The position numbers and the translations under genes are program-made. A stretch of DNA of 64,000 bases from Haliotis cracherodii (Eukaryota): assembly GCF_022045235.1 (NCBI RefSeq), contig NW_027266268.1, forward strand, positions 37,262,001 through 37,326,000, read 5' to 3'. Under the pieces are notes generated by a model, which was given only the letters and a program-made list of their open reading frames with translations, ran no database searches and had not been told where the DNA came from. Below, piece after piece: positions 6,335 to 55,448 of the stretch (its first letter is position 1; the number at the start of each line of letters is the position of its first letter).

Positions 6335-6393
6335 TTATGACGTCAGACTGGCCCAAACGACGACAAACTCGGGTTCGCTAACTTTTCCGTTAT
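6335..6393 (-). CDS. Gene A terminal coding exon
   Basis: gtatttccag|AT-NGKVSEPEFVVVWASLTS-TAA, completes EF4. Confidence 0.85.
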
Positions 6394-9300
6394 CTGGAAA
6401 TACACAGCAATACTGTAGAAGAACTGTAGCCGATCACTACATGAATGCTAATCTTCCACGAAGAAATGTTGTAATGCTGCTGTGATTATTGATCCCGAAT
6501 GCAGGAAACCCAACCTGTTCTGAGATAAAGGGATGGTCTCATGCGATGCCGCTCACTCACACACTCATGACTGAAATTCACTCACAAAAGCACACGTTGC
6601 CGATGTAGGTGAAGGTTAACTGGTTAACTGTCTATAGGTGTGATAATAACATGTACTGCTCGTATGGCGCATTCCACATGCGCCGTCAGTTTAAGGTTGG
6701 GCCGTCCGGGCCAGCGCACCTAGCGGGCTAGTGAAGGGAACATAAATTGAAAAGGATCGCCCATTTCACTCGGTGTGAGTGATTGGAGGATATTTTATGA
6801 CGCATCACGTATCCATGTCAGGCCGCTGAACAGTGAGACGCAGGCACGGTGCTGTTCCCAAGACAACGTTCACACTGAGCGTTCAAAACAACCGACTAGA
6901 TCTACTTATGCCCTAAACACAAGGGGATATCTCAGTGTATCGGGAACATTGTGAGCATTACGTGTAATATTTGCTGACTAAATGGCGTCATATAGTCAGA
7001 GGGGCGATTGGGTAGCCCAGTGGTTATAGCGTTCGCTCGTCACGTTGAAGACCCAGGTTCGATTTCCGACATGGGTACAATGTGTGAAACCCATTTCTGT
7101 TATACCCCGGGTGGGATATTTCTAAAAGCGGCGTAAAACCAAACTCATTCACTAACTCACTCACTCACTCACTCACTCACTCACTCACTCACTCACATAG
7201 TCAGCATTGGCTGAATGTGAGGGTTTGAGTGATAAAGTTTGAGATTAACGCGCTTTGAACTGTATTTCAGCAGTATCATGGCGTGTATACGGGCCATAGA
7301 CGTTTACACTTTGGTAAATCATACGATCACTGATATGGTACTGACAATCCTAGAATTAAGAATCCCAATCACGCGAATTTGGGATTCGAACCAAAATCAT
7401 AGGATCATGATACGCCTTCGTGAAGCACTAACTGCAGAACGAACTGCGGCGCCTTAGATGGGAGGCATTCCATGTCCCTGTGAGCGAGCAATAGCACAGC
7501 TCATGTTGCTGATATAAGGGTAACGCTATTTTTCAGGGCATTATCATTTGCAGAAGCCCGAGGTTTTCCATTAACTGCCCGACGAAGGAGGGCAGTTGAA
7601 AAGACCGAGGGCTTCTGCAAATGATAATGCCCTGAAAAAGAGCGTTACCGTTATTATAGCTAAAATGGATGGAATTTGTTATCAAATAAAAAGAAACAAC
7701 AACCACGGTTTTGAAACATTTACTTCAATCAACACGAATGTCACTGACCACATTTTCAGATATGGAAACGTCATAGAACAAACCAGATGACGTCACTACA
7801 ATTCGTGACGTCATGTTCTCTACCCTATGACGTCACCTAACAACGGGCTTGATAATGGCCCGTCGTCAAGCAATAAGAGGGCATTATCAAGTTACAGTGG
7901 CCCGCTCATTTCTGATAGCGTGCGGGTGGTTTAATGATAATTCTATCCATTTTAGCTATAACTGTAAATAACAGGGGCGGTCAGGTAGCCTAGTGGTTAA
8001 AGCTTTCGCTCGCCACGCCGAAGACCTGGGTTCGATTCCCGACATGGGTACAATGTGTGAAGCCCATTTCTGGTTTCCCCGCCGTGTTATTGCTGGAATA
8101 TTGCTAGAGGCGGCGTAAAAAACATACTCAGTCAGTCAGTGTAAATAGTGTCAGAATCACACCAACCGGACACAATGAGCCCCACCCCATTTAACTTTGT
8201 TTGTTTGTTTGTTTGTTTGTTTGTTTGTTTGTGTGGGTTTTTTGTGTGTTCGTTTGTCTGTGTGTTTGTTGTTTGACGCCGCACTCAGCAGTAGGACAGC
8301 TCAATGACGGCGGTCTGTAAATAATCGAGGCTAGACCAGACAACCCTGTGATTGACATCATGAGCATTGACCTACGCAATTCGGATACAATGGCATGCAT
8401 CAACAAAGTCAGCGAGCCTGACCACACGACCCCGTTAGTCGCCTTTAAAGACAAGCATAGTCGCCTCTTACGGCAAGCATGGGTTGCTGTAGACCTTTTC
8501 TACCCCGGATCTTTACGGGTTGGGGCAGCAAGAACAGTGTGACTTAAGTGTACTTAATTCGTCATAGCTTGGGGAGTTGGTATTCGTTGTGTGCCTCTAT
8601 AACAGTTTATCATAATATCTACCGTCGAGGTCGAAGTAGCTGAAGACCCTGTCCATGTCGGGTGTTCGGGTGATGAAGCCGTTCTGGTCGGTGTCTGCGC
8701 GGTGGAAGAGGTAGACGGCGGCCAGGACGCTGCCGAGATTCCGACTCTGCCAGTGGGCAGTGAACTCCGCCTCCGCGATCGTCCCGTCACCTGGGGATAA
8801 CAGTAACAGTAACAGTAACAATAACAGTAACAGTAACGTATCAAATGAGTACAGGTTATAATATAAGTGAGTGAGTGAGTTTTGTTTAACGTCGCTTTTA
8901 ACAGTATTCCAGTTATATCACGGTGTGTCAGCTTAATGTGGGAGGAAAGCCCGATGTGATGCAGGTCTCAGACGTTTACCACTTCGGTGAAAACCCACGA
9001 AAACGGGTATGGTGCTGACAAACCTAGAACCGGGATTCGAACCCACAATCATAGGTTTCTGGCGTGCCCAAGGGACGCAACTCTGCACAGCACCTTAGAC
9101 GACTGGGCCATCCGTGCCCCCGGTTATAATATAAGTGCAGTGAGTGAGTGAGTTGGATTTAACGCCGCTTTAAACAGAATTAAGTTATATCCCCGCGGGT
9201 GAGCTTGACATGGGATGAAAGTGCACTTTGGACCAACGATCCCAGGTATTAGGCTAGCATACCGAGGTTCATAACTGGATTCAAGCACCGGCAAGCAGAT

Positions 9301-12300
9301 CTGTGCACGGCTATGGGAAGCAACTGCACATCGAATATCAATGAGCCACAAAACTTCACGCTCTTGATCGACCCGGATATGGACGTGATATTCTTGATCC
9401 GGATGTAGGTTTGTATCACTGAGTAAGAAGGATGCTGTAGGTTTGATATCACTTGTCTCCCCGTAACTAGACTTGATATTACTTGTCTCCCCGTAACTAG
9501 ACTTGATATCACTTGCCTCGCCGGAACTAGACTTGATATTACTTGTCTCCCCGGAACTAGACTTGATATTACTTGTCTCCCCGGAACTAGACTTGATATT
9601 ACTTGTCTCCCCGGAACTAGACTTGATATTACTTGTCTCCCCGAAACTAGACTTGATATCACTTGCCTCCCCGAAACTAGACTTGATATCACTTGCCTCC
9701 CCGAAACTAGACTTGATATCACTTGTCTCCCCAGAACTAGACTTGATATCACTTGTCTCCCCAGAACTAGACTCGTTATCACTTGTCTCCCCGAAACTAG
9801 ACTTAATATCAATTGTCTCCCCGGAACTAGACTTGATATTACACAGCCAACCGGAAAAACGCTTGGTTATCAACAAGAAATATAGTACCTTTCATCTGGC
9901 ATTAACACAGTATTTTGTCAAGATCACGTGAACCAATCAGATCCCACCATTCTGACATGGGAGTAAGATAATGTCTCCAGTGCTCACCGTTCCCATCAAA
10001 TGCAGTAAATATGTCAGCGACTTCCAGCTTTGTGAGAAACCCATCTGCTGTCCTGTTCATTTCGGCAAGATGAAACAACTGCCTGGCCTGAGTAGGGTCG
10101 ACGAGGGGGGGACGCTCGGGGTGGCCCATCACCCTGCCGGGGGACAACAACACCCACAGGCTCATTACAACATAATGACAAGCATTTAGGAAATAGTGTC
10201 CAATTCATACATAACATAATGGAAATAGGAACTAAAACCATTAAATGCCTCTACAGAACGTGTTTACTTGAAATACATCACGGATTTGTAGCCACAACGC
10301 TCACCCATTATCGCTAATTTTTAAGCAACGAATCAAGGAACGGTTTGGTTGCAGCGAGAGTGACGTCATCGACGTCTTAGGCCAATGATTGCCGCGTTTA
10401 CTTTGTACAAACGACAATGGTCTCATTGGGTCCGTCTTGTGGCTGCATGTTCTACACATTGCTTCCCTAAATGTGTAGATCGATGCTCATGATGTTAATC
10501 ACTGGATTGTCTGGTGCAGACTCGGAATATTGGAATATTGCTGAGTACGACAAACAAACACCACCGACATATTGCATTAATTTCAGGCAATGGTAGGGTT
10601 CGTACAAAGAGTGAGTGAGTGAGTATGGTTTTACGCCGCTTTTAGCAATATTCCAGCAATATCACGGCGGGGGACACCAGGAATGGTCGTACAAAGAAGC
10701 ATAGTGAAGTTGACTTAGGTGAAACGGGTTTTAACGTTGCATGGATTTCTAAGTACACTGATTCCGAGCCGACCAACTCTTGTTTTATCTGCTTAATGCC
10801 GAGCGCCATCTTGTAACGTCTCTTTGACATGACGTGCCCGGGTATCGAACCACCGACCTGTCGCACTCCTGGTAAATATAACAATATAAGGCCATACAGG
10901 AAGTCTGCTCACCCCAACGTCAAAGCTGAGATGACAACTATACTCAATATCCCGGATAGACTAATCTGAAAGTAGAATGTCATGAATTAAGGTCATAAAT
11001 ATGAGATGGAGTTTTCGGCCCGTGAAGATCCGGGGTAGAGTAAGTCTTCAACAACCCAGGCATGCCCTAAAAGGCGACTATGCTTGTCGTAAGAGGCGAC
11101 TATGCTTGTCGTAAGAGGCTACTATGCTTGTCGTTAGAGGCGACTATGCTTGTCGTATGAGGCGACTAACGGGATCGGGTGGTCAGGCTCGCTGGCTTGG
11201 TTGATACATTTCATGGTATCCCAAATGCGTGGATCGTTGGTCATGATGTCAATCACTGGATTGTCTGAATCTAGACTCGATTATTTACAGACCGCCGTCA
11301 TATAGCTGGAATAGTGCGGTACAAGTACAACAAGTACCATATTTTAATGTGTTTTGGTATGACCTGCCAGGGATCGAACCACCGAACTTGCGCTCTCCTG
11401 GTAGACGCTCTATCCACTAGACCACAGAACCGGTCCCGTAAACACAAGAGATAAACTCATCTCTCGTATTTACATTGTAAGTGTGTGTGTCTGTCTGTGT
11501 CTGTCTGTATGTGTGCGCGTGTGCGTGTATGTGTGCGAAACGAACGTGACTGTTATTATTTTAATTTAGCACTTCATCCTTTATGCGATGAAGCAGTGTG
11601 CTGTCTTCCCTTGTGTAAGATCTCAACAACCTTGCAAACCAAAGTACTGAAATGAACCTGATTGTGCTTATTTCTTTAGTGGACGTTTACTGTATTTGAT
11701 AGCTGAATATGACCAGCGCACCTGTCAGTTTCACATGCCTACTAGAACTTCTGATAACCTGGAATCTACAAACTGAGATAGTCATATCCACACGTGGAAT
11801 ACACCAACATCTCGTCTATCCGAACCCCATTAATCCGAATTAGCGGGGTTTCGTTGTATGTCACAACTATTCGATTCAAAAGCTTTGTATTATTTGGTTG
11901 ACTTCTAGATATTCGAACGAAATGGCTTATCTTTTTATTCGTGAGGTATATACTCACCGCCAAAAGAAATGTGAATACCATACATGTTGGTTAATATATA
12001 AAGACTTACTCATATTGAAGAGATGTTACATGTGCATTGGTTCGATGCTGATGAACGCATCACATGTGACGTTATAGATCCATGACACGAGATCACCATT
12101 TGCCTCGTGCAGGATTAGATTTGGTTTGGAAATCACGTACATCATATCGCGATAAGAATAAAGGCACTCTGTGGTAACACATGACTGATTGTTAGTTATA
12201 TCATTAATTGGTACACATCTCTTCATAACGTACATATTTCTCTACATGTTTCCGTGGTCCGCGTTTCTTTTGGCGGTGAGTGTATTTGTTGACAAACCTT

Positions 12301-35382: not shown

Positions 35383-37376
35383 GATGGCGAGGATCTAGCT
35401 GCAAAAGAGTAAACACAATATTAAATTGACTTATTATCTGGTTATTACGAGTGTAACTACAGTATTCTAGTTACTATAGCAACTGAAGAAGCGTGGAATT
35501 AATTAATTATCAAAACAAAGACGACAAAGCCCATGTTCATAACCGCAAGAGACGATTAATGGGATCGGCTGACATGGTTGATGCATGTCATCGTATCCCA
35601 ATCGCCTTGATCGATGCTCATGATGTCCATTACTGGTTTGTCTTAGCCAGACTCGATTATTTACAGACCTACATATAGCTGGAATATTGCTGAGTGCAGA
35701 GTTTAACAACAAACAGAAAAACAAATCAATGATCATAAGAAATCTGTACTAAATGAAGAAACTGTAATGGTAAGAACGACCCCACATGTTTCCATGTGCT
35801 CTTGAAGGATAACTTAAGTAAATACTTATTCCATTTTTAAAACAATGACCTACAGCCGTGTCGACTTATAGTTTGCGTACAGAGACTCGCTTTCTATTTA
35901 TCACCCCAAATCAACACTATGATATCAATTGTTATACATCTATTGAGAATCTTGCAATTCCATTGGTTAACCCGAAGCACGTGACGGAACAAAACATTTC
36001 AATGTTCACATCCAAATCACGTGACCTGTCACGTGATGAATATTGATTCTCTTCAACTAGAATAAAAAAAAGGCGTCCGGTTCTGATGTATCGCGGTTGG
36101 CAGGTTTCTGTAATCGACAGAGGACAGTTTCATAACTGTTTCAGGGCTTCATAAAGTTTGAAGTGAATTTCAGTAAAACAAAACGAATGATTACTCTTGG
36201 CGAGGTCAACACGGGAAAAAAAGGACACTCGGACCCGTCCGCTTCGGTAGTCTTACCGAACCTCGGCCTGTCTTCTGTGTAAAAAGTACATCTAACTACA
36301 ATCAGTGTCAGAGAGAAAAGTGATGTCAATTGACCGTGATGTCATGGTAATCGATGACGTCACAATGGTATGGAAAGCATTGTTAGGCAATTTCTCCCGT
36401 GATAGCCACTTTTACATGATAAACGTACATGCTGCCCTGTCAGGTATATTATGAGAACTACCTTCGATTAATTGCGGTTCATCGTTATCAAGGAAGGTAT
36501 GTCAGAAGATTAATTCCAATGGAAAGATATAGAGGATATTTCATGTGCCAAGTTTCTCTCATCTCATTTTCCCGAGAAACATTGAATATATTTTATTATA
36601 TACTTTTTGTGTAGTTCTCTACGGGAATCGTTTTTTATTACAAATGTTAAACCTTGAAACGTACATTCTCCCTAACTGACACGCAGGCACGTTTCACCAC
36701 CCCATGTAATTGCGACTTAAAAAGAAGTTCCGAGTACGCAAAATCATAAAAAATATAAACAAAAGTAATAACAATATTGAATTAAATTCTTTATCATGCA
36801 TTTGGATGTGATTATAAACGAAATCCGCTGTTCGAAGCGAAGGAATACACGCTGATCAAGTAACAAAAATGAGAAATGTAAAGTTTATAGCAAAACATTT
36901 AAAAGAGAATCACAAAGGGCAAGAAGCGATATTATCTCCATAAATGGCCATCTGTCATTATTTTGCCTTGTAAATGTGGAGCGAGGTTAACGTAATCAGG
37001 AAGTCGGCAATTTGTGTACGTGTCGGACACTAGATAAAGGGAGACAATTTAAGGGGAGGTCACTCTTGTTATCAATTGTTTAGTTCACTGCAAAGAAAAC
37101 ATCGCTTTACTCAGAAAAATCAATCAATTGAAGCATATCATAAAAAAACGTAATTCTGAGTTTCGAGTTGGTTATTCTCTTTCTTACCCATAATCAAATT
37201 TACTGCTAGCATCTCTGGATCCGAACCCTCACCATCCCGATATGTCTAGCGTCTGTAGCCATAAACAAATGTATCCCTACGCAAGGGTAAACAAACGACC
37301 ATATCACGGCACGTCCGATTGTGTACAATAAGCTCGCTATTACCATGCACATTTAGTTTATTTGTATCACTTATAT

Positions 37377-40655: not shown

Positions 40656-41209
40656 TAAATTCTGAATAACTCCTGATCAGACTTATAAGTTTCATTAAGT
40701 GATATCTTGTTTGAACCGGTTGTATTGCCCATGAAAGCATTTGAAATGCTCACGATGATGAAGATAATATCTTATGAAATCAATATAAATTACTTTTGTG
40801 ATGAGGTTCAGATATTATTCATGTCAGACGAAAATTGACCACTTCGTTTTAACAGAACCAAAAACCTGGGGTGTCTGTGACTTCACTAAATATTCTTGTA
40901 ATGCGAAATCAAGTTCCCTCCTGTACATTACTTACTTTGGAGATTCAACGTGCTCTTTCCGACTGATGCGTATTTCGCACACGGGCCCGGCCAGGCCAGT
41001 TAATGTGTTTCCGAGAGGGACGAAAGTGGTGTGAGCAACCCAAGGGGGGGGGGGGGGGGGGGGTCTGTTGCCAATCACCTATCAGCGCCGATCATATGTT
41101 GGCTTCCCTTGTTAGTTTCAACCCTTTGTTATTTTCCACCTTTTGTTATCTTGTAATTTTGTTGTCCTTACATTTTCATATATATGCTCTCTGCCTCATG
41201 GCATTCATT

Positions 41210-41249
41210 CACCTGATGAAGGAGGAACCATATACTCCGAAACGTTGTG
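41210..41249 (+). ncRNA. Minimal hammerhead ribozyme in Penelope-like terminal repeat
   Basis: CAC-CTGATGA-A-GGAG(loop)CTCC-GAAAC-GTT-GTG followed by AATAAA; matches the minimal type I hammerheads of Penelope-like elements. Confidence 0.7.
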
Positions 41250-43254
41250 TTCCTCATAATAAAGAAGTTGACCTCCATATATTCTCTTCCTTATGTGTAT
41301 CACTTCTAAATGCCTTTCAAAGACCTAATCCAGTGATCGATAATAAATTTTATGAGCAACGACCCACGATGCCGGAGTACGATGAAACACCACGTCAGCC
41401 AGCCTGACCTCTTCTAACCTGGAATCCTCACGGGACCTTTATATTAGTAGGACTGAGACAAAATGAAATTTCGCTTCCTTGACTGAAGGATGTTAGATAT
41501 ATGAGAACGCGACCGTTACCATTTATGTTTTGGTTTGACAGAGGTTCAGAAGCACATTATGAGGCAAACGTTGAATTGTGGAATTTATTTTCTTCCATAC
41601 TGTCAAAGACGTCCACAGTCAGACTGACCTCGGGGGGTCATTGTACGACCTTGTTTTCTGACCCCCAATAGAGATTTATTTTTTAACTTTTCGTGAGCAC
41701 CTGCCGCCATCACTGATTATTAGTGATCCATTCCTATAATTTTCATCACTATTTTGTCTTTTACGCCCAATGAAATCTGTTTCGGCAGATAATCGAGACT
41801 GGTTATTCTCTGGCGTTGATGTTTACTATTTGCAATAATTCTGTTCATTTTATACACCGAAAAATATGATCTAATTTGATTTATCTGAAGATAGATTTGT
41901 GCTATAAGTGAACATTTGAAGGGGTCGCCTTAACATTATCTTGCTTCTTGTCAATATGTCAATATACTGGTTTCTTAGGGTCAAAGTCCACCGAAACTAA
42001 TCTGTCAACCAATTGATTCTGTTGCCTGCCTGTGTGCTTGCAGCCTAACGCCCAGACCTTCCCTGTAAGCAAACATCCAGATAATACAAGGAAAACATTT
42101 ACGGGGTTTGGGAATGACAATATATTTAAATGAAATATTCAATATTGGAAATTGATAATGACAAGACATGTTTCTGTGGTTCAGCATGAACATATTTCTT
42201 AAAGGTTTCTCATTACTTATAAGCAGCAGAATATCTGCGCTGTGCACAGTAGACCTAATTCTAAGCCAACATATCGTTTTCAGTTTTATGAAAATATGTA
42301 CTGCACTATTGTGGCACTGGATTGTCTGGTTCATGATTATTTTGTCACGATCGATTTACAGGACGCTCACTTTTTGGTGGGAGTGGTGGGTGCTGCCGGT
42401 AGAGCGGGACATGCTTACGATTTTCGCGAACACCTTGTGCCATCCCTGATTGTCAGTGATCCATAATTTTCACGGCTATTTTGGCTTTTGAGCTTAGTGG
42501 ATTTTTTCAGCAGATAATCGAGACTGGCCTTGCGTTGGCGTTCTATATATATTTTTTAAAGCAAGGAAGAAATTTAAACAACGAATGATGATACACAAAA
42601 TAGATGAGATGTTAATGTATGGCAGCATTCATATCATAACCCACATCAACCCTAGCTGATATAGGAGTCTCGGGTTGATTTGGGGTTTGATATGAAGACG
42701 TTAATATAACCTTTTTATCAATTGTAAAATGTGAATGCAAAACATTTTCACCTTGTTTGGAAGTCATTGTCACGGGAAAACTAGCTGAGCAGACGACGCA
42801 CTAAGGGACGTAACTCTAAGTTTTCCCACCTGGGATCGCCAATTTTAAATGCGTTCATAAATCATATGTGGCCGTCGGAGGGGTGGGTGGGTTATTACAC
42901 CCCCGTGATATGACCGTCTCCATGTTAGACTATCGCACATTCAAAATGCCTCATATCATTGATAGGTATATGATAAAATGTTCTATAGCTAAAATACCCG
43001 TATGTACCCTAACTATCAAATACATGTTTCGTTTTGTCACCAGGTCCCCGAAAGCAGGCGTGTCACTGTATTACAGTTAGGCAATGTCAACGGAGATAAG
43101 AAAGGTACACAACGCCAGAGGCCATACCTCTGTCACCAGGCCTAGTTTGAGGGTGTGTGTGTGTGTGGTGGGGGGTGTAGTCATGCAATATATGAGTGAT
43201 GAGTGATCACTGAGAGTGTTGAGGCTTTGCTGTTATCGCCGGAGACTAATGTAC

Positions 43255-43700
43255 TTTTCCACCAGCTACAGCCTTTGGTGTCCACACTTCACAATTTTTA
43301 GGTACGATCGTGCATGCTTTTTCTACTTTGATTTTAAAGAGCGCCTTACGACTTTTACTCAAAAATGGTTTAATCAGGGTTTCAACATCCAAAGCCTTTA
43401 GTAAAGCTTTCAAAAGATTTTATGGTAGACATTTGAACGACATTTCCAAATGTGACGACTCGGTGACAAAATTATGTCCGTTGTAATTATTTTGACTCGT
43501 GCCATATGTTCCCCTGTTTTTTCAGGTGAACAGTTGCCTTGCATTTGCATGTGTTTGTGATGGGTACCACCGGTGGGACAGGATACGCTCACCTTTTATC
43601 ACCTTATATCATCAATATTTAATTTTAATTCATAAACACATGCGTGTAACATAGTTAGAATCGTATAATGGACTCTGCTTTAAGCGGATAGTTCTCATGA
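43255..43700 (+). mobile_element. Decayed Penelope-like retroelement 3' fragment (RT C-terminus plus 3' motif)
   Basis: Across frameshifts reads AFGVHTSQF.RYDRAC.Y.DFKER..FTQKWFNQGF...KAFKRFYGRH, followed by a GGGTACCACCGGTGGGACAGG motif also seen at 42378 and 54247. Confidence 0.5.
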
Positions 43701-44249
43701 TTATGGACAGGGCTCTGTCGCTATTATTTGTGAGAGAGCGAATGGGTTTAATGCCATTTTGAATAGTACCTCCCTATCACGTGTATCAGCGTGAGGATGT
43801 AACGCAGGGTGGAGACGTTCACCATTAGGGATACCCATCCCCACGGTTATGGTACTGACAAACCAAGTGTCGTCACCATGACGACTCTGGGATTCGAACC
43901 ATGGTCGTTGGATTCAGGAACGAATGTGGGCTAACAATATGTACAGCGAATTGTCTGCGGCGATGAATACGGAGCTGGTCGTCCCAGAACCAGTTCAATC
44001 TGCTGTCGTCAGTGAAACATTCGCTGTTAACCTGGTAACCAGGTAACAGGTAACACGGTAACTATTCAGCTAATGATGCCAACGATAAGGCTGAAAGCTT
44101 TACTACAGTTTTCAGATCATACGGTGAACTGAACCTGTTCACGACTCATCCTGTCTCGGGGCTGGCCAAGCTATGTTAAAACGTCGCAACACTCTGGCGA
44201 TGGTACAGCTGACGTTCCTGCAAGGCAGATTTGCTGTCATACAGTAGTT

Positions 44250-44400
44250 GGGCGACGGGGTAGCCGAGAGGTTAAAGTGTTCGCTCGACCGCCTAAGAAC
44301 CGGGTTCGATTCCCAAAATGTGAAGCTTATTCCTGATCCCCCGCCGTGATATTGCTGGAATATTGCTCAAAGCGGCATAAAACCAAACTTACTCACTCAT
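44250..44400 (+). mobile_element. SINE family A copy (diverged)
   Basis: A/B boxes and shared tail. Confidence 0.7.
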
Positions 44401-45050
44401 ACCGTAGTCTGGGGCCAGTCAGCGTCATCATATATAGATCATTAAAATATAAAGTCCCCTTTAGATACCGTACATATTACACGCAGTGTATATAAAAACG
44501 TTTTGTAATACATGAGTTGTAATAAAAAAAGGTATCTAGCAGGGATGACTGAAGTGATATATTTATTACTCACTTAGATTCAACGTCGAAATATATGGTA
44601 TATGGCCCGCTATTGGCTTTGTGATAACATACGAGTCAGCAGATGGCTATTTGATATTATATTTGTTCTAAATACGCCATGATATACACTTTATGTTCAT
44701 TTTCGGAGCACGAAAGATTCCAAACACGAGACTGCATCGCTTGACATGACATTTCTTACGATCGTCCAAGGGAGACTACTCTCATGTACAACACGAAGTT
44801 CAAGGTCGTAAGTAGGCTAATGCTGTGATCATCTTTCAACAAAATACTTTTTAATGCCACGATGCTGGCACTTTTACAATACAAAAGTGGGATTCCGTAT
44901 ATTCCATTTCGCACGTATTTGTTTGCGGGTTTGCCGATTGATCACAGCCAGTGCAATAAGTCACAGACTTACATATTAAAGTAAAAAATATCGATAATAC
45001 AGCATTGGGATGCACGCATAGTGTGTCTGAGTATTACTGTTGTTTTGTGC

Positions 45051-45088
<38 letters not shown>

Positions 45089-45125
45089 AAGTAGTAGTAG
45101 TAGTTGTAGTAGAGTGCAGTAGTAG
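45051..45125. repeat. (AGT)n microsatellite
   Basis: Direct reading. Confidence 0.9.
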
Positions 45126-46379
45126 CGTCAATCGGGAGGAGAGTACAGTTGCACAGCGCCACCGACGTCCCTGTTCTCAAGGCAACTGACGCCAAACATA
45201 GTTCCGTCTGCACGTGGTGTTATTAAGTAATGTGTAATAACGGTGTATTGTTATTAAAACTGATCCCTTCACAAAATGAGAAATACAAAACAATCTTCCC
45301 TAAATTATTCGAACAAGATGACAACGTGCAAATGTACAGACGTCTTCGGAAATACCTTCCCAAGCAACCTGTTGTATCAAAGGCTTAGCGACGGCTCACG
45401 TTTAATCTTATTAAAAGAAAGATGTGAGAAAATTGAACTTCAAAACTGACGTAGTAATGCTAAACAGAGTCCAATCTAGCCACCAATCTGGTCAGAAATG
45501 TTATTACATTATAATAATCTGCCAAGACAACAAAAATTATGCAATCGGCATAACTTGGAGAAAGTGGCCGATGAACAAACTTTCTATTTGCAGTGGCCTT
45601 GTCCGTGTTTGCCCACGCAATACGAGACGTCCCTAAACACACGTGCAACATCGACAGACGGACAAAAACGCCACACACCACTGTGCTCATGTCTGGACTA
45701 CTTCCGACCACGTTCCGCTGGCCAACAATCGGCAATCCTCGTCCGTTTCCGTCACCGCAAGGAAGACCCTCAGAACTGTGAATGCTGGAAATTTGGGGGC
45801 AACTTGTCTCAATACATCAAACACTCATGTTTCCTCCCAAACACTCTCACGGAAGCATATTGTTGTGCGTTAAGTGATTATTTGTATTTAATTTTCGTTT
45901 GTTTAAAATAGTTTCGGAAAAAATACCTGTGTTTTATTTGTACTGGTGTAAATACTATGTTATTTAATATAATATCTGTTCATTCGTCTGATCAATGTTT
46001 TATCATACCAAATTCATTGATAAAACCTAGACCTGGTACCAGAAGACAGAGCGACACGGCCTAGAGGGTGGTTTTACAACTCAATTAACAATGTCAATAT
46101 ACCCATGCTCGTGGGTTTCGCTGACGTGGTATCTGGCTCAGACCTTCCTCGCTTCCGGTTTTTCTTCCACATTAAGCTAACACACCGCGGTATAACTGGT
46201 AATCTGTTCAAAGCGGCGTTAAACTCAACTTACCCCTCGCGTATTTAGAAGTTTTTATCCTAGTGAGTATATTCAAAAGAAACGTGTTCCAAGATGATGA
46301 CTGTATACAAAGTCACGTGCCTGCAGTAGTTCATGGCTAGCATTGACTACACGCGGTCTTTGGATTTACTTAAACAATA

Positions 46380-46560
46380 AGAGGCGACTAACGGGATCAG
46401 GTGATCAGGCTCGTTGACTTGGTTGATGCATGTCATCGTAACCCAATAAGTGGATCGATGCTCATGATGTCAATCATTGGATTGTCTGGTCCAGACTCGA
46501 TTATTTACAGACCGCCTACACATAGCTTGAATATTGCTGAGTGCGGCGTTAAACAACAAA
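46380..46560 (+). mobile_element. SINE-like family D, 5'-truncated
   Basis: Consensus match. Confidence 0.75.
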
Positions 46561-46934
46561 GAATGAAAGGAAACGAGTCCCCTCAGATGACTCTTTTGAA
46601 CAGAAATGGCCGATGGTGTTCAGAAAATAGCCTAAGGTGGGGTAAGCTAGTGGTTCAAGTATTCGCTCGTCCCACCAAAGGCGCGGGTTCGACTACTTGA
46701 GAACAATGTGTGAAGCCGATCTCCCCCTCCGTGATATTGCTGGAATATTGCTAACAGCGCCGTGAAATCATCCTTTCTTATTAAGGCTCCGAAATGATCG
46801 TCTTTTAGGCGTTCCAGAAATGTATGATCGTGGGTTCGAATCTCAATCTACGGACACTAACAACACCAATGACTTATTGACCATATTCTAGTTTTACACC
46901 TTTACGTCTAATCCTTCCTTCTTTATTCCTCGCC

Positions 46935-47100
46935 GGGGCGGTCGGGTAGCCTAGTGGTTTAAGCGTTGGCTCGTCACGTCGAAGGCCCGGGTTCGATTCC
47001 CCACATGGGTTAAATGTGTGAAGCCAATTTCTGGTGTCAACCGCCGTGATATTGCTGGAATATTGGTAAAAGCGGTGTAAAACCATACTCACTCACTCAC
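46935..47100 (+). mobile_element. SINE family A copy
   Basis: TSD ttattcctc. Confidence 0.8.
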
Positions 47101-47388
47101 TTATTCCTCCCCCTTTCGCGTTACTGTACAACGTATATCCACACAAGGTTTAACGTCTGGTGCCAGTCTTCAAGAGCATAACATAGAAGCCCCTTCTAGC
47201 TGCCCTGTGATGTCTGTTGTCTGTTTATGGTGTCTGAAGTCTGCATTGGATTGTGTCATGTACTTGAATTAAGTTTATTCGTGTCCGTTTGAGGCGAGGT
47301 GAATACTATGGACGGATCTCACGACGTCAATACTGCGATAGTCGTTTATGTGTATGCAGTAGTTTTCCTAATCTGCTCTCTCATTAAA

Positions 47389-47660
47389 TGAGTTGGGTTT
47401 AACGTCCCTTTGAACAGCATTCCAGCTCTATCACGACGTGTCAGCTTAATGTGGGAGGAAAGCCCGAAGTGATGCAGGTCTCAGACGTTTACCACTACGG
47501 TGAAACCCACGAGCACGGGTATGGTGCTGACAAACCTAGAAACATAATCGGGGTGAACCGGGATTCGAACCCACAATCGAAGGTTTCTGGCATACCCAAG
47601 GGGCGCTACTCTGCACACCAAATTTCGGCACCAAAGACGACTGGGTCACCCGTGTCCCCT
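47389..47660 (-). mobile_element. SINE family B copy
   Basis: Reverse complement of consensus. Confidence 0.8.
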
Positions 47661-48650
47661 CTCACTCAGTGTGTGATAATCAAATGATTATGATACCTCT
47701 GACACAACACTTTTAATTGTCTATTTTTCAACTGAACCTCAGATAAAAACAAATACACATTTGGGTTATTGTTTATTGTTTCTTTTTCAATATATTGTAC
47801 GTATTCCTCCACGGAATGAACCTGAGAAAGAAAAAAGTGTAAGTATTTTACTCATGCAAAACATGTGAGCGTTTTAGAATCACTATATAAGAAATATACG
47901 ACTAGTGGTCGTTTTTTTATCGTACAGTAAAACACTACAGGGAGAATTGACCATGAGGGGCACAGTCGTTTATTTCTTATATGAAATATCAACACAAAGA
48001 ACAGCCTCTCTAAGGATGTTAAATGTGCAATCTTTAAAAAATATTTACCCGTATTTAAATAACCTGATTACAATACTCCCTGAATACAATCCTGCAATGT
48101 CGGAACAGGGGGTTAAATTTGGTATTTGCCGCATATTTTCACAATCCTCACGTCGATTATCTGCACCTTTTCCGACCCAATACCAATTGTCATATAATGC
48201 CCGATTTTGGGTGCGGCCGTTAGGCCATTCCGTCTGGGGAACAGCATAATAGACACATCCCTCTCAAAAAATAACGTCGTCCAATATATGTCGTCATCAA
48301 TTTCGCGAGCGCATGTTCGAATTTTCAGAAATGACGTCATGATAGAACAATGTTTTATCGGGAAATAAAACACACTTCGTTCTTCATTGTTCTTTGCGAT
48401 TTATCGCGTAACTGTCTATATACATAATGTTCAACCCCGACTACAACCCGTGAAGATCCGGGTTAAAATTTATCCTAAGCTGTTGTCGTGGCGACTAACG
48501 TGATCGAGTGGTAAGGCTCGGTAACTTGGTCGTTACATGTCATCGCATCCCAAATGCGTAGATTGATGCGAATGCTGTCAATCACTGAATTGTCTGGTCA
48601 AGATTCGATAATTTATAGACCGCCGCCACATTAATAGAACATTGATGCAT

Positions 48651-49571
48651 TTAAGGATTGACTGTGTATTTTTTTCGGTTCATTGAGGTATGAATCGAAA
48701 AACCGATGTGCAAACTGTATGAATCCGCGTAGCGGATTCTTACAAAAGTTTGCACATCGGTTTTTCGATTCATACCTCAGTGAACCGAAAAAAATACACA
48801 GTCAATGCTTATAATTAAATTCGACAACGTAAAACATGTTTTATCTACAATAGTTTAACCCAAAACAGTTGCATATATCAAAACAGACAAAAATGACGGC
48901 ATTGATGAACATTCCAGGTGTAGGAATACATACAGTGGCGTGACATGAATCAGGTGATCGTTTAATTTATGCACATAACTTGACAGCCCTACACAGTCAG
49001 TAGCCAATCAACGGAGAGTGGGATTAAAACAATGTTCATTTGACCTGTCAATTAAGGCAAGAGGCGAAAAGACTTGCAACAGTCAGACTGTAACGAACCG
49101 GAAAAAATATGTCCGAGAGAAGGCGGCTGTTTCAAATAACATAGTCATTTACTGCGTGATTCAAACATTACTTCTCTGATTACGGTAAAACAGTTGGAGA
49201 AATGCTAGTTAGAAATGAAACGCGAAGACATGAAAGTTCAACCGAGGCGAGCGGGAAAAAAAACTGGCGAGCGAGCCTGCACGTTTGCTGTTTCATTCAT
49301 TCTCGGCCTTCGGTTTCAAAGGGTAGTTTGGACAATGAATATGCATGAAAGTCGCTAAATGTCCTGTGCATGACGATACACGTGAGCAGAAAGGGAATTC
49401 CCTCGACTGTAATATTGGGATTCCCCGACATTCCGAAGTAATAAAAGTAGTGCGCAGCGGTGGGCGTGGCTGAATTTTTTACATTCATTGGGAAATAAAT
49501 GCAATAACACGTGACCAATTCAGCTAATCAGAATGCAGGAATTTCCATGAACACAACGAAAATTTAATTAT
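48651..49571. mobile_element. Hairpin-terminal non-autonomous element P2
   Basis: ~160-bp hairpin 48652-48811 (loop CCGCGTAGCGG), ataattaaatt ... aatttaattat; interrupts a family D SINE tail. Confidence 0.75.
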
Positions 49572-49683
49572 GTGGCGTTAACAACAAACAAACAAGACGA
49601 TTTGATCATTATCAGCATGCAGTGTGAAAGCTATACCGTATAGTCACAGGAACCAACCCTCTGTTGTGTACCTACCGTTGCAT

Positions 49684-49710
49684 CTACAGGTGACCAGCGA
49701 GTAGACTGAT
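49684..49710 (-). CDS. Gene D probable terminal coding exon
   Basis: Strong acceptor cttcctcttccccatctag|ISLLAGHL-TAG, phase 0. Confidence 0.55.
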   Translation of the reverse strand: MSLLAGHL

Positions 49711-52700
49711 CTAGATGGGGAAGAGGAAGCGGAGAAAATATTAAGCATCATATTTTCATCAATATGTATATCAGGGAGTGAACAAATGTTGTTTGACGCC
49801 GCAATCAGCAATATTCCAGCTATTGATGCCTGTCTGCATTACGGATCAAATCAGTTATACCAGCAGTGTTCATTTAAGAATTGACCTTCACTTTGTGTGA
49901 GTTCATTGGATTATGAACCTTCATAGAGTGAGGGCCAAACTGTATGAACGTCGGAGCTTGCGACGACGTTCTTACAATGTTAAGCCCTCACTCTATGAAG
50001 GTTCATAATCCAATGAACTCACACAAAGTGAAAGTCAATTCTTATAATTTTTTATCACAATTTCTTACCTCAAAGGATGTAGGCCAATATCTAAACACAA
50101 TTTTATTTAGTACGTGTGACTTCATGTTTACACTGACAGCCAAACAACAACCAGCTATATCGCGGAATAAAATAGTTCCCCAAAAAGAGAGGTGACATGA
50201 GCGAATGGATGCAGAACTTGCTCTTCAAAAACATCTAACGCAACACATGTGTTCATATAATATCCCCATTAGATGAGAAAGGTCTGTAATGAACTACCTC
50301 AGTAAGTCAGTCACAATGACAGCGCGTCGTAATACATTTACATCAAGTACAAGACGTCAAAATGGCCGACACGATAAACGTGACGGGAGGATTTCCGAAG
50401 TTGTTAATGAACCTGTGGCGGTTACATGTGTTAGTCATCATTGATCAACTAACCGATTATTAAAAGGTGATTAAAGATGCGTCAAACAGACACCAAGGTA
50501 AATTCGTAGATTGCTGGATACGGTCACTGTCAGCCCAGACACAGATCGAGTCGATACTGACGATAGTTTGGATGTGCATTTTTTCGTTTGTTCATTAGGA
50601 TGGGCCGTAGCGAGGAAATTCGTAAACAATCATGCAGTCAAGCTCTCTTACGTTTCTCAATGTATACTGAATTGCTGAGACCAAGATTAAAGGTTCTAAA
50701 TGATCAGAAATAATGCTTATGTGTGTTTTCGTGCTAGGGAATTCCCAGGGGTTTCCCCAGGAATGTGGAAGTAGTCCATCAGTGTTTACGTCATTTCAAG
50801 AACACGGTCTCGTGAAAAACGTATGAACGTCAAATTGTGTCGTTCTTACACTTATGAACGTGAATATCGCGGTCATGTGACATACCTCTCGTCCAATGCA
50901 AAAGCCGTATATCGTGTAAACGTCAAATTAAAAAATTATTTTAGTAACAATGTTCTCATAACACTATCGCTATGGATGTTGTTTAACACAGATGTTGTTT
51001 GTTGTTTGTAAGACACATCGTCAACCATGGCACGTCAACAAGTATCGTACCAATTACTTTCGTTCTCCCAACGTCGTTTGTAAAATTATACAAACGTAAA
51101 TTATTAAGTAAAAGTATGTGGATATATATATTATAATTAATTGCGAGTTTGGTCAAAAATTACTAAATACCTTTGCCAGTTCTATCAGATCAACGTGGTC
51201 GTCGTCTGAAATATGAAATGGAAATGAAATTAATTTTCTCAACCCCAAATGAATTTAAGATTCCAATTTTCTGTTGTAGCTTGCATTATTAGATAACGTG
51301 AAAGGATTACGCGGTAAAATAGATAACAGTGACAACGGGGATGCGCAAGAACAACGGGGGAGTCGCTTGAATAACAGGAATTACTTGCAGAGTGAGTATG
51401 GTTTTAGGCCGCGTTTAGAAATAGTCGCGCAAAATCACTGCAGGGGAAACAAAAACTCACACATGTTTCCACGTAGGGAGTCGACCTTAGGGGAACGCTT
51501 TACCCTCTGGCCTACCCACCGTAACCACTTTGCGGGAGTGCTAAGAATTTAGGACAAAACGCGCGTTGATTTTGCTTTATGCAGACAATCATCAATATTC
51601 TTGACACAACACTTCTTCTGAGCATTGAAACGAGATGTTGTATTTACTTATACTACGGTTAACAAAGTGATCACGTGACTCACGGTTAGCGTTATACATC
51701 CTATAAAGATGGCTGGTATCGACGCTGGTGATCTTGTTGTCATGGTTACTGTCAATGCCACGGAACAGAGCGTCGGCCTGGGCCTTGTTTCCAAAATTCT
51801 CCTTGGTCCAGCCAGCCTCGAACTCAGCCTTCGACACAGCGTTGTCCTCTGAACAAAACAGACACGTGAAGATGCGGGTCTTCAGCCACCCATGCTTGCC
51901 GTAACTGGTGACTATGCTACAGGTGGTCAGGCTCTCGGACTTGATGATTGTCATCGTATCCCAAATTCGTAGATCGATGCTCATGATATCAATCACTTGA
52001 TTGTCTGGTCCAGACTCGATTATATATAGACCGCCGTCATATAGCTGGAATATTGCTGAGTGCGACGTTAAACAACAAACAAACACCTCACATGAGAATC
52101 GAAAGCAGGTATTCGGCGTGACGAGCGACCGTTCTGACTCCTAAACTGTCCCAACGCTCGGACCATGCCTCACGCCAAAGTTAACGGACAAACAAAACTG
52201 TATTAGTTTCACATTACCATGAAATTTTTGATGGAAAAAATAAACCCGAAATACTTACTGTCAGTGTCGAACGGCTTAAACAGTTTTGTAAATTCAGCTG
52301 TGGACAAGTGTTCATCCTTGTTATTGTCCGCACGTGTGAAGAGGACAGCGAAGGCGGACTCCTTGTATATCTTAACAAGCGGACGGATATTTACATCACA
52401 GTATTATTACAGACAGACAAACAGACAGACAGACACAGAAACAGACAGTTTATTCAGTATTCAAGGCCATATGGCCCATAGTGCAGTTCAGTTTCAACAG
52501 ATACATAACAATCAACGTGATCTTAACATAGTATAATATATTCACCTGAGTCTAAATACATGTTTCAAATACAATGCTAAAGATTTGATAACGTCTTCAT
52601 TGGTCGAATTCAACGAATTGATCATCCGTTGATTGTCTTTGTGTGTTATGTCTAAATTAGGTAGAAACTTTAATCTCAACGTTTTATATTTTTCACATAT

Positions 52701-55448
52701 AAAAAGAACATGAAACTCGTCTTCAATCTCCTTGTTGGTACAGTTAGAACATATATAATTTTCAAAATCACTGTCCTTGGTTCTACGATATTTATTGACA
52801 AAGAAGTTGTGGAGAGATATTCTAAATTTACACAGAGCTTTCAATTGAGTTTTATCTTGTAATATGCTTAAATATTTTAATGATTTAATACCAGCATAAT
52901 GCTTGAGAAAGTGTTAAGAGGAAACTTGTTAGTGCCAGTTTTGATGAAATATGTCTAATAATATGCATTCTACACCCCAAACATCGCTTAACAAGGCAAG
53001 TAATTTTTCATATCCATCTTTTCAAGTTAACGCTTTCTTAATAGCCACAGTTGTTAGACACTCACTCACGCACTCGCCTATGAGTGATACTATAGGGGAT
53101 CATTTATTTGAATATCATTTTGTACTATTCCTAATGGCGTCACCCTTCGTATATAATCTAAGAGACACTCACATCTTGCCACTTGTGATTAAATTCTTCA
53201 CCAGAAACTTTGCCATTTCCTGTTAGAATAAAAAGGTATTCTCCTTAAAAACTGTTTTGAGCATTGTCACTGTTATAAGATGCTTTTTCAGCTCCTGAAT
53301 GAAAGCAAGTCACGAACAAGTTACAACGATAGCGATATATGGATGACTCGCTGACCTGGTTGATGCATGTCTTCGTATCCCACTTGCGGAGATCAATGCG
53401 CATGATGCCAATAACTGGATTGTCTGGTCCGGACTCGGTTATTTACAGCCCGCAATCATATAGCTGGAATATTGCTGGGTGTCGAGTAAGACAACAAACA
53501 AACAAAAATCCACGAACACCACCACTTATGACAAAGAATTTGTGTACGCACCGTCAACGTCGAACCTGCTGTAGAGAATGGTGAGGTCTTTGTGGTCGAT
53601 GACGCCGTCGGCATTGAGGTCGGCAAGCACAAAGTACGCATTGGCCAGCCCCTTCGAGAAGTGGGTGATGGCCATCCACGTCGGTACAAACTCAGCAGGC
53701 GTTACATCTCCGTCACCTAAACGGTCAAGGTCAAATTAGTATTCGGGGTCAAGTTCAGGGTCAAGTTCAGTGTCAAGGTCAGGGTCAAGGTCAAGTTAGA
53801 ATTAAATACAGTAAACTACGGTTATAACGAACTCGAAGGGACCAATAATCTAAGTTCGTTATAACCGTAGTCTGTTATAAACATATATACAACATACATA
53901 CAGCAAATGGACGGGATCAAAACACATTTCGTTATATTCGTTATAAGCGTGTTCGTTATAAACGTAGTTTACTGTACACATAAACGTTGCAATATTATTT
54001 CAGAAAATACGGATGATGACTTTGCTCAGAACTAAACGAATCCTGGCAATCTGGAATGACACATACTAATGAACAAAGGTTAGCGATTTTAACGTCATTG
54101 TCAAATGTACACAAAACACTGAAGACGCTAAATGATGACAACTACCTTCATTCTGTCAATTATACGTGTCGGTACATTTGTTATCGTTGGTCCAGTATGT
54201 CGTCGTTAAATAGACGGGACATTTACTTTTTATGCAGATTGTGTGAGTGGAGGGTGTACTACCGGTAGAGCAGGACATGCTTACCCTTTTCGCGAACACC
54301 TGGTGTCATCAGTTATTTTCAGTAATCCATCCATATAATTTCCACAGATATGTTGCCTTTATGCCAAGTGGAATCTATTACGGCAGACAGCTAGGCTGGT
54401 TATTCTCTTGCAATGACAATTTACATGTGTTTCATGTGGTTCCAGAAGTACAGTTTGTCATGAACTTACCATTGGCATCGAACCCCTTGAATATGTCGTC
54501 AAGCTCGGTTTGTGTAATTGTCCCATCTAGGTTCTTGTCTGCTTTTAAGTACAGTAGATTAATCAGCCCGAACATGTCCAGGTCTCTGGAAGTCCAACAG
54601 AAAATCAGCAGGTTTCATATCCTCATTTGATCAATATATTCATGTTCTGTCAGAGGTGAGGTGAGGTGAGGTGAGGTGAGGTAAGGTGAAATGGGGTTAA
54701 CGTCGCGTCCAAGATTATTGCACTTATATAGCGACGTGCATGTACGTGTGTGTGTTTGTTTGGCTGCTTGTACTAGTCCGGACTGATGCCGATTTATAGT
54801 GCTAGCCCACTGAGATACCATGCCGCAGTTTAACATGAATACCTCACTCAGACACAGTATACTGACTCCAAGCCGACCAGTCCTTGTTTTAGCCCATTAA
54901 TGCCGAGCGCCAGACAGGGTAACAACAAGTAACATCTTTCAACGTCTTTTGGTATGACGCGGCCGGGGATCGAACCCCGGACCTTCCGCTCCCCAGGCGG
55001 ACGCTCTACCATTAGACCACGGAGGCGGTCTGTTCTGTCAGAGGTTTTATATCCTTCCATAACACTCGAACAACCATGCGAAAATCTGGCAATTCATCTA
55101 CTGTGTCAAACTCAGTGTGTTTCATTAGTGTTTCATTGGTGTTTGAAGGGAAGGAATGATGGAATTAGGGGAAACATTAAATTCACAAGTACCGTATGGC
55201 GTTTTATTGTGAATGGTTTACCCTAAATTCCAAAACAATAATAGGACGTAAAATTTATTTATTACCGCCCAATCTCATGAGATATTTCACTTAAAGATAT
55301 TATTAATTAATTTAACATATAGGATCATACCTTCAGTCGCTTATTCAATTGTTTTTTAAAACACAGAGATCTAATGTTTGTTCACTTACTTGTTTTGACA
55401 AAGACTCAGGGGCATCAAACATACAAATAGTAGACCGAGCTTCAACAT
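49684..55448 (-). CDS. Gene D: secreted 8-EF-hand calcium-binding protein (~241 aa), tandem doubling of the A/B/C module
   Basis: Exons 55448-55390, 54585-54470, 53716-53552, 53219-53173, 52370-52259, 51848-51684, 51205-51171, 49710-49684 (GT-AG, phases 2/1/1/0/1/1/0): MLKLGLLFVCLMPLSLC-QNKDLDMFGLINLLYLKADKNLDGTITQTELDDIFKGFDANGDGDVTPAEFVPTWMAITHFSKGLANAYFVLADLNADGVIDHKDLTILYSRFDVDGNGKVSGEEFNHKWQDIYKESAFAVLFTRADNNKDEHLSTAEFTKLFKPFDTDKDNAVSKAEFEAGWTKENFGNKAQADALFRGIDSNHDNKITSVDTSHLYRMYNANHDDHVDLIELAKISLLAGHL*. Possible upstream ATG|GT exon at 56659-56657. The last exon is less certain (read-through stop at 51153). Confidence 0.85.
49875..51136. mobile_element. Hairpin-terminal non-autonomous element P3 (last intron of gene D)
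   Basis: ~170-bp hairpin 49875-50044, TTATAA junction, degenerate inverse at 51117-51136; right end approximate. Confidence 0.65.
51171..51205 (-). CDS. Gene D exon (EF8)
   Basis: catatttcag|AC-DDHVDLIELAK|gtattt. Confidence 0.75.
51684..51848 (-). CDS. Gene D exon (EF6-EF7)
   Basis: ttttgttcag|AG-DNAVSKAEF...DSNHDNKITSVD...YNAN-C|gtgagt. Confidence 0.88.
51865..52085 (+). mobile_element. SINE-like family D copy (intron of gene D)
   Basis: Consensus match. Confidence 0.75.
52259..52370 (-). CDS. Gene D exon (EF5)
   Basis: ttgttaag|IYKESAFAVLFTRADNNKDEHLSTAE...FDTD-A|gtaagt. Confidence 0.85.
52410..52950 (-). mobile_element. 3' end of L2/Crack/Daphne-group LINE (intron of gene D)
   Basis: ALCKFRISLH..ICSNC..EIEDEFHVLFICEKY..LR; AATAAA and (TCTG)n tail. 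Confidence 0.7.
53173..53219 (-). CDS. Gene D exon (EF4)
   Basis: ttctaacag|GA-NGKVSGEEFNHKWQD|gtgagt. Confidence 0.85.
53552..53716 (-). CDS. Gene D exon (EF2-EF3)
   Basis: cgtttag|GT-DGDVTPAEF...DLNADGVIDHKD...FDVD-G|gtgcgt. Confidence 0.88.
53809..53974. mobile_element. Same MITE family (intron of gene D)
   Basis: TA|CAGTAAACTACG...CGTAGTTTACTG|TA. Confidence 0.8.
54470..54585 (-). CDS. Gene D exon (EF1)
   Basis: acttccag|A-DLDMF...DKNLDGTITQTE...FDAN-G|gtaagt. Confidence 0.88.
54654..55030 (-). mobile_element. SINE family C copy (intron of gene D)
   Basis: TSD tgttctgtcagagg. Confidence 0.85.
55390..55448 (-). CDS. Gene D signal-peptide exon
   Basis: ttgtttcag|ATG LKLGLLFVCLMPLSLCQN-AA|gtaagt. 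Confidence 0.85.

Follow-up and report, generated by a model that had tools for sequence, protein, structure and literature searches.

A cluster of intron-split IMSP5-like EF-hand genes with predicted secreted products in the black abalone Haliotis cracherodii

A stretch of 64,000 nucleotides (nt) from the black abalone Haliotis cracherodii (RefSeq assembly GCF_022045235.1, contig NW_027266268.1, positions 37,262,001 to 37,326,000; hereafter the window) yields fragments only in a bacterial-style list of open reading frames (ORFs), which raises the question of whether the EF-loop motifs on its minus strand belong to intact genes and, if so, to which protein family. The window consists of AT-rich, repeat-laden eukaryotic DNA of ∼41% GC. 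Four co-oriented minus-strand genes, named A to D from high to low coordinates, were found between positions 6335 and 55448: one with eight coding exons encodes a protein with eight EF loops and three with four coding exons each encode proteins with four EF loops. The four genes are real and intact, and their structure is established by the exon models and by matches to RefSeq proteins and homologs. The best explanation for the whole is that these are genes of the IMSP5/SMP5-like family, which probably encode secreted, acidic Ca2+-binding modules that act in the extrapallial space or the shell matrix.

When both strands of the window were scanned with a strict EF-loop pattern, eight matches were obtained on the minus strand, from 17404 to 54539; the remaining strict matches, on either strand, contained stop codons or lacked an EF context. 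Each of the eight matches was followed 8 residues on by the motif F-D-x-[DN], one extra base and then GT. At the downstream acceptors, AG and two further bases preceded the motif [DN]-G-x-[IV]-x-x-x-E-F-x-x-x-W. The donor thus lies one base past loop codon 3, and the acceptor AG with its two bases lies ahead of codon 5. Because the donor and acceptor patterns match, it is concluded that a phase-1 intron interrupts each even-numbered loop at codon 4. This position was found in 10/10 even-numbered loops of genes A to D, and a phase-2 intron inside or just past the hydrophobic N-terminus was found in all four genes, as the first-pass annotation of this DNA had described. First exons were located by scanning for a hydrophobic segment that starts with ATG and ends in a phase-2 donor, by paralog similarity (gene C from gene B) and by orthologs. 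Other hydrophobic, ATG-started candidates for first exons were dropped, the true first exons being fixed by the orthologs. In the assembled models (A8, B4, C4, and D4) all exons have AG/GT ends and there are no internal stops. Joined exons were used for frame, length and composition, while family and domain searches were queried with single exons or with database proteins.

The first-pass annotation had also proposed four intact, intron-split and co-oriented genes with 21 exons, and had called the cluster hidden. The intact genes were recovered, with stop-free exon models and with A and D corresponding to RefSeq proteins. The exon count stands at 20 coding exons and would reach 21 only if gene D uses an ATG-only 5' exon. 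The description as hidden does not hold: the RefSeq annotation of H. cracherodii contains at least A and D, and it is only a prokaryote-style ORF list that fails to show the genes.

Gene A (A8; 55448 to 49684, minus strand) comprises 726 nt in eight coding exons and encodes 241 amino acids (aa) with eight loops from the ATG at 55448. All eight exons are 100% identical to the H. cracherodii protein P0155 (XP_071096856.1, 242 aa), which is labeled 'uncharacterized protein'. Exon 1 (55390-55448) carries the start codon and the signal-peptide region, ends in phase 2 and is identical to P0155 residues 2-20 (19/19). Exon 2 (54470-54585), with loop 1 and codons 1-3 of loop 2 up to the phase-1 donor, matched residues 22-59 (38/38), and exon 3 (53552-53716), with the remainder of loop 2, loop 3 and the start of loop 4, matched residues 61-114 (54/54). 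The remainder of loop 4 and a phase-0 donor in the linker between the two modules are found in exon 4 (53173-53219; 15/15). Exon 5 (52259-52370; 37/37) encodes loop 5 and the start of loop 6, and exon 6 (51684-51848; 54/54) encodes the remainder of loop 6, loop 7 and the start of loop 8. Exon 7 (51171-51205), with the remainder of loop 8, ends in the donor AAG|GTATTT, and its spliced form corresponds to P0155. The distant 3' mini-exon of 27 nt, which the first-pass annotation had placed at 49710-49684, is confirmed by P0155, with the donor after ...LAK: exon 8 (49684-49710) encodes the final 8 codons and the stop and is identical to P0155 residues 235-242 (8/8). Read-through of exon 7 (51153-51170) leads to a stop at 51153 and a protein of 238 aa, with the same ending as the H. 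rufescens model P0163; this may be an alternative 3' end beside the mini-exon splice. The 5' exon that gives the gene A RefSeq isoforms X1 and X2 their extra M or MLFQ was looked for in the 5' sequence and was not located.

Gene D (D4; 10983 to 6335, minus strand; 444 nt, 147 aa) could likewise be assigned to a RefSeq protein of H. cracherodii, P0159 (XP_071096852.1, 142 aa), which is 100% identical to exons 2-4 and to exon 1 from the acceptor at 10965 onward. Exon 1 (10913-10983) is the signal-peptide exon. It starts either at the ATG at 10983, to which the start of the H. asinina ortholog P0160 (147 aa) corresponds, or, in line with the H. cracherodii RefSeq model, at the acceptor at 10965. 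A candidate ATG-only 5' exon end, recognized by the pattern ATG|GTAAG at 12592-12590 (minus strand), would explain the N-terminus of the RefSeq protein, which reads M followed by ISLSG. Exon 2 (9988-10133; 48/48 to P0159) encodes a degenerate loop 1 with an N-R-T sequon and the start of loop 2, exon 3 (8623-8790; 55/55) the remainder of loop 2, a loop 3 of 13 residues and the start of loop 4, and exon 4 (6335-6393; 18/18) the remainder of loop 4 and the stop. For both A and D, exon-by-exon comparison with RefSeq showed that wherever exons meet in phase 1 or phase 2, exactly one residue is absent, namely that of the split codon.

The models of genes B and C were compared with homologs from other mollusks. 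Their exons are collinear on the full-length homologs P0031, P0012, and P0018 from Gigantopelta, Littorina, and Ylistrum, again with one residue absent per junction. A search with P0031 aimed at B/C proteins of Haliotis returned P0031 itself only. Gene B (B4; 35382 to 31521, minus strand) comprises 411 nt and encodes 136 aa. Its exon 1 (35339-35382), found by the scan for a hydrophobic ATG start and donor, contains the start codon and the first 14 signal-peptide residues up to a phase-2 donor. Exon 2 (33487-33611; P0031 residues 12-52) encodes the end of the signal peptide, loop 1 and the start of loop 2, exon 3 (32415-32582; residues 54-108) the remainder of loop 2, loop 3 and the start of loop 4, and exon 4 (31521-31594; residues 110-130) the remainder of loop 4 and the stop. 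Gene C (C4; 20812 to 15984, minus strand; 417 nt, 138 aa) has the same arrangement. Exon 1 (20769-20812), with the start codon and the start of the signal peptide, shares 86.5% nucleotide identity with exon 1 of B, and exon 2 (20218-20342), with loop 1 and the start of loop 2, matched EF-hand_5 with 27.8 bits, above the cut-off. Exon 3 (17370-17537), with the remainder of loop 2, loop 3 and the start of loop 4, was placed by EF-hand and homolog alignment. Exon 4 (15984-16063), with the remainder of loop 4 and the stop, shares, together with its acceptor, 87.6% nucleotide identity with the exon 4 region of B.

An assembly gap (N; 16106-16239) falls within intron 3 of gene C (17369-16064), where 42 nt separate it from the last-exon acceptor downstream. 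Across the gap the donor and acceptor phases agree, and the homolog alignment runs from exon 3 (reference residues 54-108) to exon 4 (110-131) without loss of residues, so that, judged by this alignment, the gap appears to remove no coding residue of C. The 97 nt from 16105 to 16009, which comprise 42 intronic nt and the start of exon 4, are 87.6% identical to the matching part of gene B. Adjoining the upstream edge of the gap (16259-16240, minus strand), a third copy of the B/C last-exon acceptor, ...TTTCAG|GTG, was found, which agrees with the acceptor of B at 17/20 positions and shares 11 exact nt with that of C itself. The gap may therefore conceal a second copy of the last exon of C or be the trace of a contig overlap that was not resolved. 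Because the acceptor copy adjoins the gap, the 3' end of C is not fully certain, and of all parts of the gene models its C-terminus carries the greatest uncertainty.

Tandem repeats are frequent around these genes. Minisatellites with periods of 52, 27, 35, 19, 30, 27/108, and 46 nt occupy introns and spacers of the cluster at 17534-18403, 18403-20172, 16486-17128, 34418-35309, 9443-9839, 28319-28773, and 14494-15710, respectively. The 27-nt unit of intron 2 of C is seen again in the spacer at 28319-28773, and in the 52-nt array at 17534-18403 the acceptor of C exon 3 is repeated ∼16 times. Short interspersed repeats of several families, with copies that are 75-95% identical to one another, occur on both strands in introns and spacers (e.g., 35568-35725, 32647-32934, 34033-34342, and 11124-11317).

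The acceptor copy beside the gap and the large minisatellites in the introns of C, one of them with the repeated exon-3 acceptor, could also be taken as signs that one or more copies, chiefly C, are nonfunctional as modeled, either as an unexpressed recent duplicate with an intact frame or with a different true last exon behind the gap. Such a state is considered quite unlikely: the frame of C is open, all its splice sites and its four loops are intact, and it differs from B by amino-acid changes, without stops or frameshifts.

The EF-hand identity predicted for these proteins was supported by profile searches. Nine of ten exons that were queried singly matched EF-hand Pfam families, with E-values of 1.5e-6 to 5e-3, and as whole proteins P0155 and P0159 passed all main EF-hand models; for EF-hand_1 they reached 77.9 and 56.0 bits, compared with a cut-off of 25.4 for P0155. 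The central pair of loops 2 and 3 could be aligned to calmodulin. To place the proteins in a family, a profile built from five exon-3-type peptides (A1) was scored against 1.84 billion representatives. At E ≤ 1e-3 it matched 3787 proteins; 220 remained at E ≤ 1e-10, and among these many were 120-250 aa in length and matched end to end. The matches that were looked up came from bivalves (Ostrea, Solemya, Ylistrum, Ruditapes, Crassostrea, Dreissena, and Potamilus), gastropods (Patella, Littorina, Biomphalaria, Bulinus, Gigantopelta, and Haliotis), the chiton Liolophura and the brachiopod Lingula. They included IMSP5-like proteins of R. philippinarum (P0022, 141 aa, matched end to end at 1.2e-19) and C. 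virginica (P0041/P0170, 2.5e-16). The B. glabrata IMSP5-like protein P0153 (238 aa) is in the cluster of P0027, and the H. asinina ortholog of gene A, P0156, which is named IMSP5-like, has 81% identity on exon 6 of A. In an alignment of 24 sequences (A2), F77 and W81 are invariant. With end-to-end profile matches to IMSP5-like proteins of several mollusks, the earlier guess of an IMSP5-like family is correct, and by sequence genes A to D are members of the known IMSP5/SMP5-like EF-hand family and are not new as a family.

All four proteins have the features expected of entry into the secretory pathway. The mean Kyte-Doolittle hydropathy at the N-terminus is 2.4-2.7 over 12 residues, and a later hydrophobic stretch is absent from all four (maximum 0.86 over 19 residues). 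Small residues are found at positions -3/-1 of the predicted mature start (SLC|Q, VSC|N, and VMG|H). The mature parts have a predicted isoelectric point (pI) of 4.05-4.73 and contain no Cys, and none of the four C-termini (...AGHL, ...PVGK, ...QIGK, and ...SLTS) is a KDEL or HDEL motif. The combination of a hydrophobic, signal-peptide-like segment, four or eight EF loops and no KDEL/HDEL, to which the first-pass annotation had pointed, is thus found in each protein. Hydrophobic N-termini recur across the family alignment, their sequences not being conserved, and D-type orthologs have kept an N-x-T sequon within the degenerate loop 1, which would fit with passage through the endoplasmic reticulum (ER). 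These features suggest that the products of genes A to D are secreted Ca2+ binders.

A signal peptide together with multiple EF hands would also be compatible with residents of the ER/Golgi lumen that, like CREC proteins or Cab45, buffer the Ca2+ of the secretory pathway and are not released. The lack of HDEL is shared by Cab45-type proteins. Residence in the lumen is nevertheless very improbable, as a retention motif is absent from all four proteins, the architecture is unlike that of CREC proteins, no CREC family was found among the Pfam and PDB matches and the family owes its name to a protein extracted from shell. CREC proteins have six or seven canonically spaced EF hands in ∼300-400 aa and often an HDEL-type end, whereas genes A to D encode 136-242 aa with a loop spacing of 20/36/20 and do not belong to the CREC family by this comparison.

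The loop spacing describes a module of ∼115 residues, acidic and Cys-free, of which there is one in B, C, and D and two in A. Counted between loop starts, the spacing is 20/36/20 for B and C and 20/35/21 for D, and both halves of A have 20/35/20. An ordinary EF pair is formed by loops 2 and 3, with their canonical spacing of 35-36 residues, and is flanked at a distance of 20 residues by loops 1 and 4; only 8 residues separate loops 1 and 4 from loops 2 and 3, and helices are shared. AlphaFold models of P0159 and P0155, built with family alignments, had a mean predicted local distance difference test (pLDDT) score of 89.6 and 84.2 and a predicted template modeling (pTM) score of 0.73 and 0.79, respectively. 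In the models, there are six helices per four loops and short beta bridges in 4/4 loops; the helix that follows loop 1 continues directly into loop 2, as does the one that follows loop 3 into loop 4. The signal peptide forms a separate helix of lower confidence, and in the eight-loop model a long helix (121-144) joins the two modules. The predicted arrangement is therefore an EF2-EF3 pair nested inside an EF1-EF4 pair via shared helices.

A Foldseek search against solved structures gave no whole-domain match (E ≥ 1e-3, template modeling score ≤ 0.39). With an exhaustive structural aligner, single EF pairs only were matched, with Z-scores of 7-8.4 and a root-mean-square deviation of 1.6-3.5 Å over 65-79 of ∼112 residues; the best match had a Z-score of 8.4 with 77 residues aligned. 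Polcalcin aligned with 67 residues at 1.6 Å, over model residues 33-142, and RASEF over residues 48-124. It is tentatively proposed, at somewhat less than even confidence, that the family defines an undescribed, compact four-loop/six-helix nested EF module that serves extracellular Ca2+ in shell-forming lophotrochozoans and is encoded in a cluster of an eight-loop double gene and four-loop genes, with conserved intron phases, predating the split of gastropods and bivalves. If confirmed, the nested module would be a new variant of EF-hand architecture, with one Ca2+ site per ∼28 residues and without a solved counterpart, and would provide a small Cys-free protein for testing secreted Ca2+ binders in biomineralization.

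The cluster extends beyond the window. A whole-genome search with the A1 profile identified two further minus-strand members past the low end of the window on the same contig (C5:37256595-37256759 and C5:37246875-37247036). They belong to two four-EF genes on the minus strand (C5:37252001-37262000 at 3300-8212 and C5:37242001-37252000 at 1860-6510) with identical split-loop intron positions, one being a recent duplicate of D (gene E) and the other of the SMP5 type with a degenerate loop 1 (gene F). As these two members adjoin the window, the cluster comprises at least six genes. The search also returned a paralog on contig C19 and weaker EF-hand arrays elsewhere in the genome, at C3:47600565-47815760 and C5:5224434-5297215.

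A maximum-likelihood tree of 35 rows was calculated, in which B, C, E, F, and the gene on contig C19 were entered by exon 3 only. The eight-loop proteins of Haliotis, Patella, Biomphalaria, and Ostrea gave two clades, one of their N-halves and one of their C-halves, each with support of 100/99. Because these clades cut across the two classes, the doubling that gave rise to the eight-loop form predates the split of gastropods and bivalves. D and E fall together with gastropod proteins of the D type from outside Haliotis cracherodii (90/82) and pair with each other (97/78); by this grouping they appear to be recent local duplicates. F and the C19 gene fall among SMP5-type proteins, and B and C fall in a poorly resolved group with proteins of Littorina, Ylistrum, Gigantopelta, and Lingula and the Ruditapes IMSP5-like protein. 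In the Solemya model P0001 (395 aa), an eight-loop protein is evidently fused to one of the B/C type, the latter with a Met and a signal peptide of its own, which suggests an identical gene adjacency and orientation in this protobranch bivalve. The cluster had been described in the first-pass annotation as lineage-expanded. This applies only to the B/C and D/E pairs, and does not apply to the eight-EF, B/C, and D types, which have orthologs in other gastropods and in bivalves. The cluster is mostly ancient, with several subtypes older than the gastropod-bivalve split.

What these proteins do was considered in the light of their homologs. In the proposed mechanism, the proteins would enter the secretory pathway via a cleavable-looking signal peptide, be released by the mantle or other epithelia, become constitutively loaded at the Ca2+ levels that prevail outside cells and bind Ca2+ in the extrapallial space or the shell matrix, either in solution or attached to the matrix. 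As the sites would be permanently filled outside the cell, a structural, mineral-interacting or carrier role is likelier than Ca2+ sensing. The name IMSP5 arose from extraction out of the shell matrix. IMSP5 is a shell-formation marker in mussel larvae, and EF-hand proteins recur generally in lophotrochozoan shell proteomes. An IMSP5-like gene marks mantle epithelial cells of the oyster (bioRxiv 10.64898/2026.05.15.723513). In Haliotis discus hannai, expression of Hdh-SMP5 is highest in the mantle and is increased in trochophores and veligers and after shell damage (PMC10741955). By analogy with the name and these homologs, a role of genes A to D in shell formation may be assumed; their secretion, Ca2+ occupancy, tissue and mineralization role are inferred from sequence and homologs.

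Several observations weigh against this explanation. The characterized Hdh-SMP5 is not among genes A to D: its primers gave no match in the window at up to 3 mismatches, and its H. cracherodii ortholog was found on contig C19 (C19:6178001-6188000, ∼5000-7300, plus strand), with exons that read ...TDWAIK... and, for the last exon, NKSVSEAEF... For both reasons, Hdh-SMP5 is concluded to be a dispersed paralog outside the cluster. Several EF loops are non-canonical: loop 1 of D reads N-R-T-A-D-G, several odd-numbered loops have Asp at position 12 and loop 3 of D has 13 residues, so that Ca2+ binding at all 20 sites is not assured. The D models of H. rufescens and H. rubra (P0157 and P0158) begin past the signal peptide, and the 5' end of D is thus modeled inconsistently across species; most likely these two starts reflect incomplete 5' models. 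Finally, an IMSP5 transcript is increased 4.8-fold in hemocytes of the Manila clam after Vibrio challenge, and a role outside the shell is therefore possible.

An alternative, with which the clam hemocyte response agrees, is that the proteins are secreted Ca2+ binders that are not part of the shell matrix and act in hemolymph, mucus or immunity, or in general extracellular Ca2+ buffering or transport. The secretory features fit this equally well as they fit a function in the shell. Hdh-SMP5 is also expressed in muscle, gonad, and hemocytes and responds to heat and starvation (PMC10741955), and the several ancient subtypes of the family may be used in different tissues. On the other hand, the founding member of the family was named as a shell-matrix protein, homologs are enriched in the mantle or mark the mantle epithelium, and the known family taxa, mollusks and the brachiopod Lingula, all mineralize. 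A function unconnected with the shell matrix is therefore regarded as a serious but clearly less probable option, and a role in the extrapallial space or shell matrix is preferred.

In practical terms, a name, the IMSP5-like cluster, is now available for these genes of the endangered black abalone, of which at least A and D are labeled 'uncharacterized protein' in RefSeq, and the one characterized abalone member of the family, Hdh-SMP5, turns out to be a dispersed paralog of a cluster of at least six genes. This gain is modest; what remains of interest is the nested module of four loops that is predicted here, together with the ancient conserved cluster.

Compared with known systems, the proteins share membership of the EF-hand superfamily with calmodulin, polcalcin, S100, and CBL proteins, and their loop 2-3 pair aligns to the lobes of calmodulin. 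They differ from calmodulin and other canonical EF pairs by the additional loops 1 and 4, which share helices with the central pair, and in being predicted to be secreted instead of cytosolic. The bacterial protein lanmodulin also has four EF loops with unusually short spacers and a compact fold. It comes from an unrelated taxon, was absent from the top 50 structural matches and differs in spacing pattern and metal specificity. CREC proteins and SPARC resemble the predicted products of genes A to D in being EF-hand proteins located in the secretory pathway or outside the cell. P0155 weakly matched SPARC_Ca_bdg, the model of the SPARC EC domain (27.8 bits, with no single stretch passing), but SPARC has disulfides and a different loop spacing, while the mature part of the abalone proteins has zero Cys. 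EFCBP and PFMG1 of Pinctada fucata and the homologs of PFMG1 with signal peptides are mantle-expressed EF-hand proteins tied to shell formation and repair, and are likened to genes A to D by description only. Hdh-SMP5 has 134 aa, a predicted signal peptide of 16 residues, a pI of 4.31 and EF loops at 36, 56, and 112 (PMC10741955). Its loop spacings of 20 and 56 are identical to those of B, C, and D, and like these it is acidic and starts with a predicted signal peptide; its place in the tree is apart from A to D, among SMP5-type proteins that include gene F. The IMSP5 of Ruditapes philippinarum and the IMSP5-like proteins of mollusks have in common with genes A to D the size, the predicted signal peptide, the four loops and the motif E-F-x-x-x-W after even-numbered loops, gene A being a double, eight-loop form.

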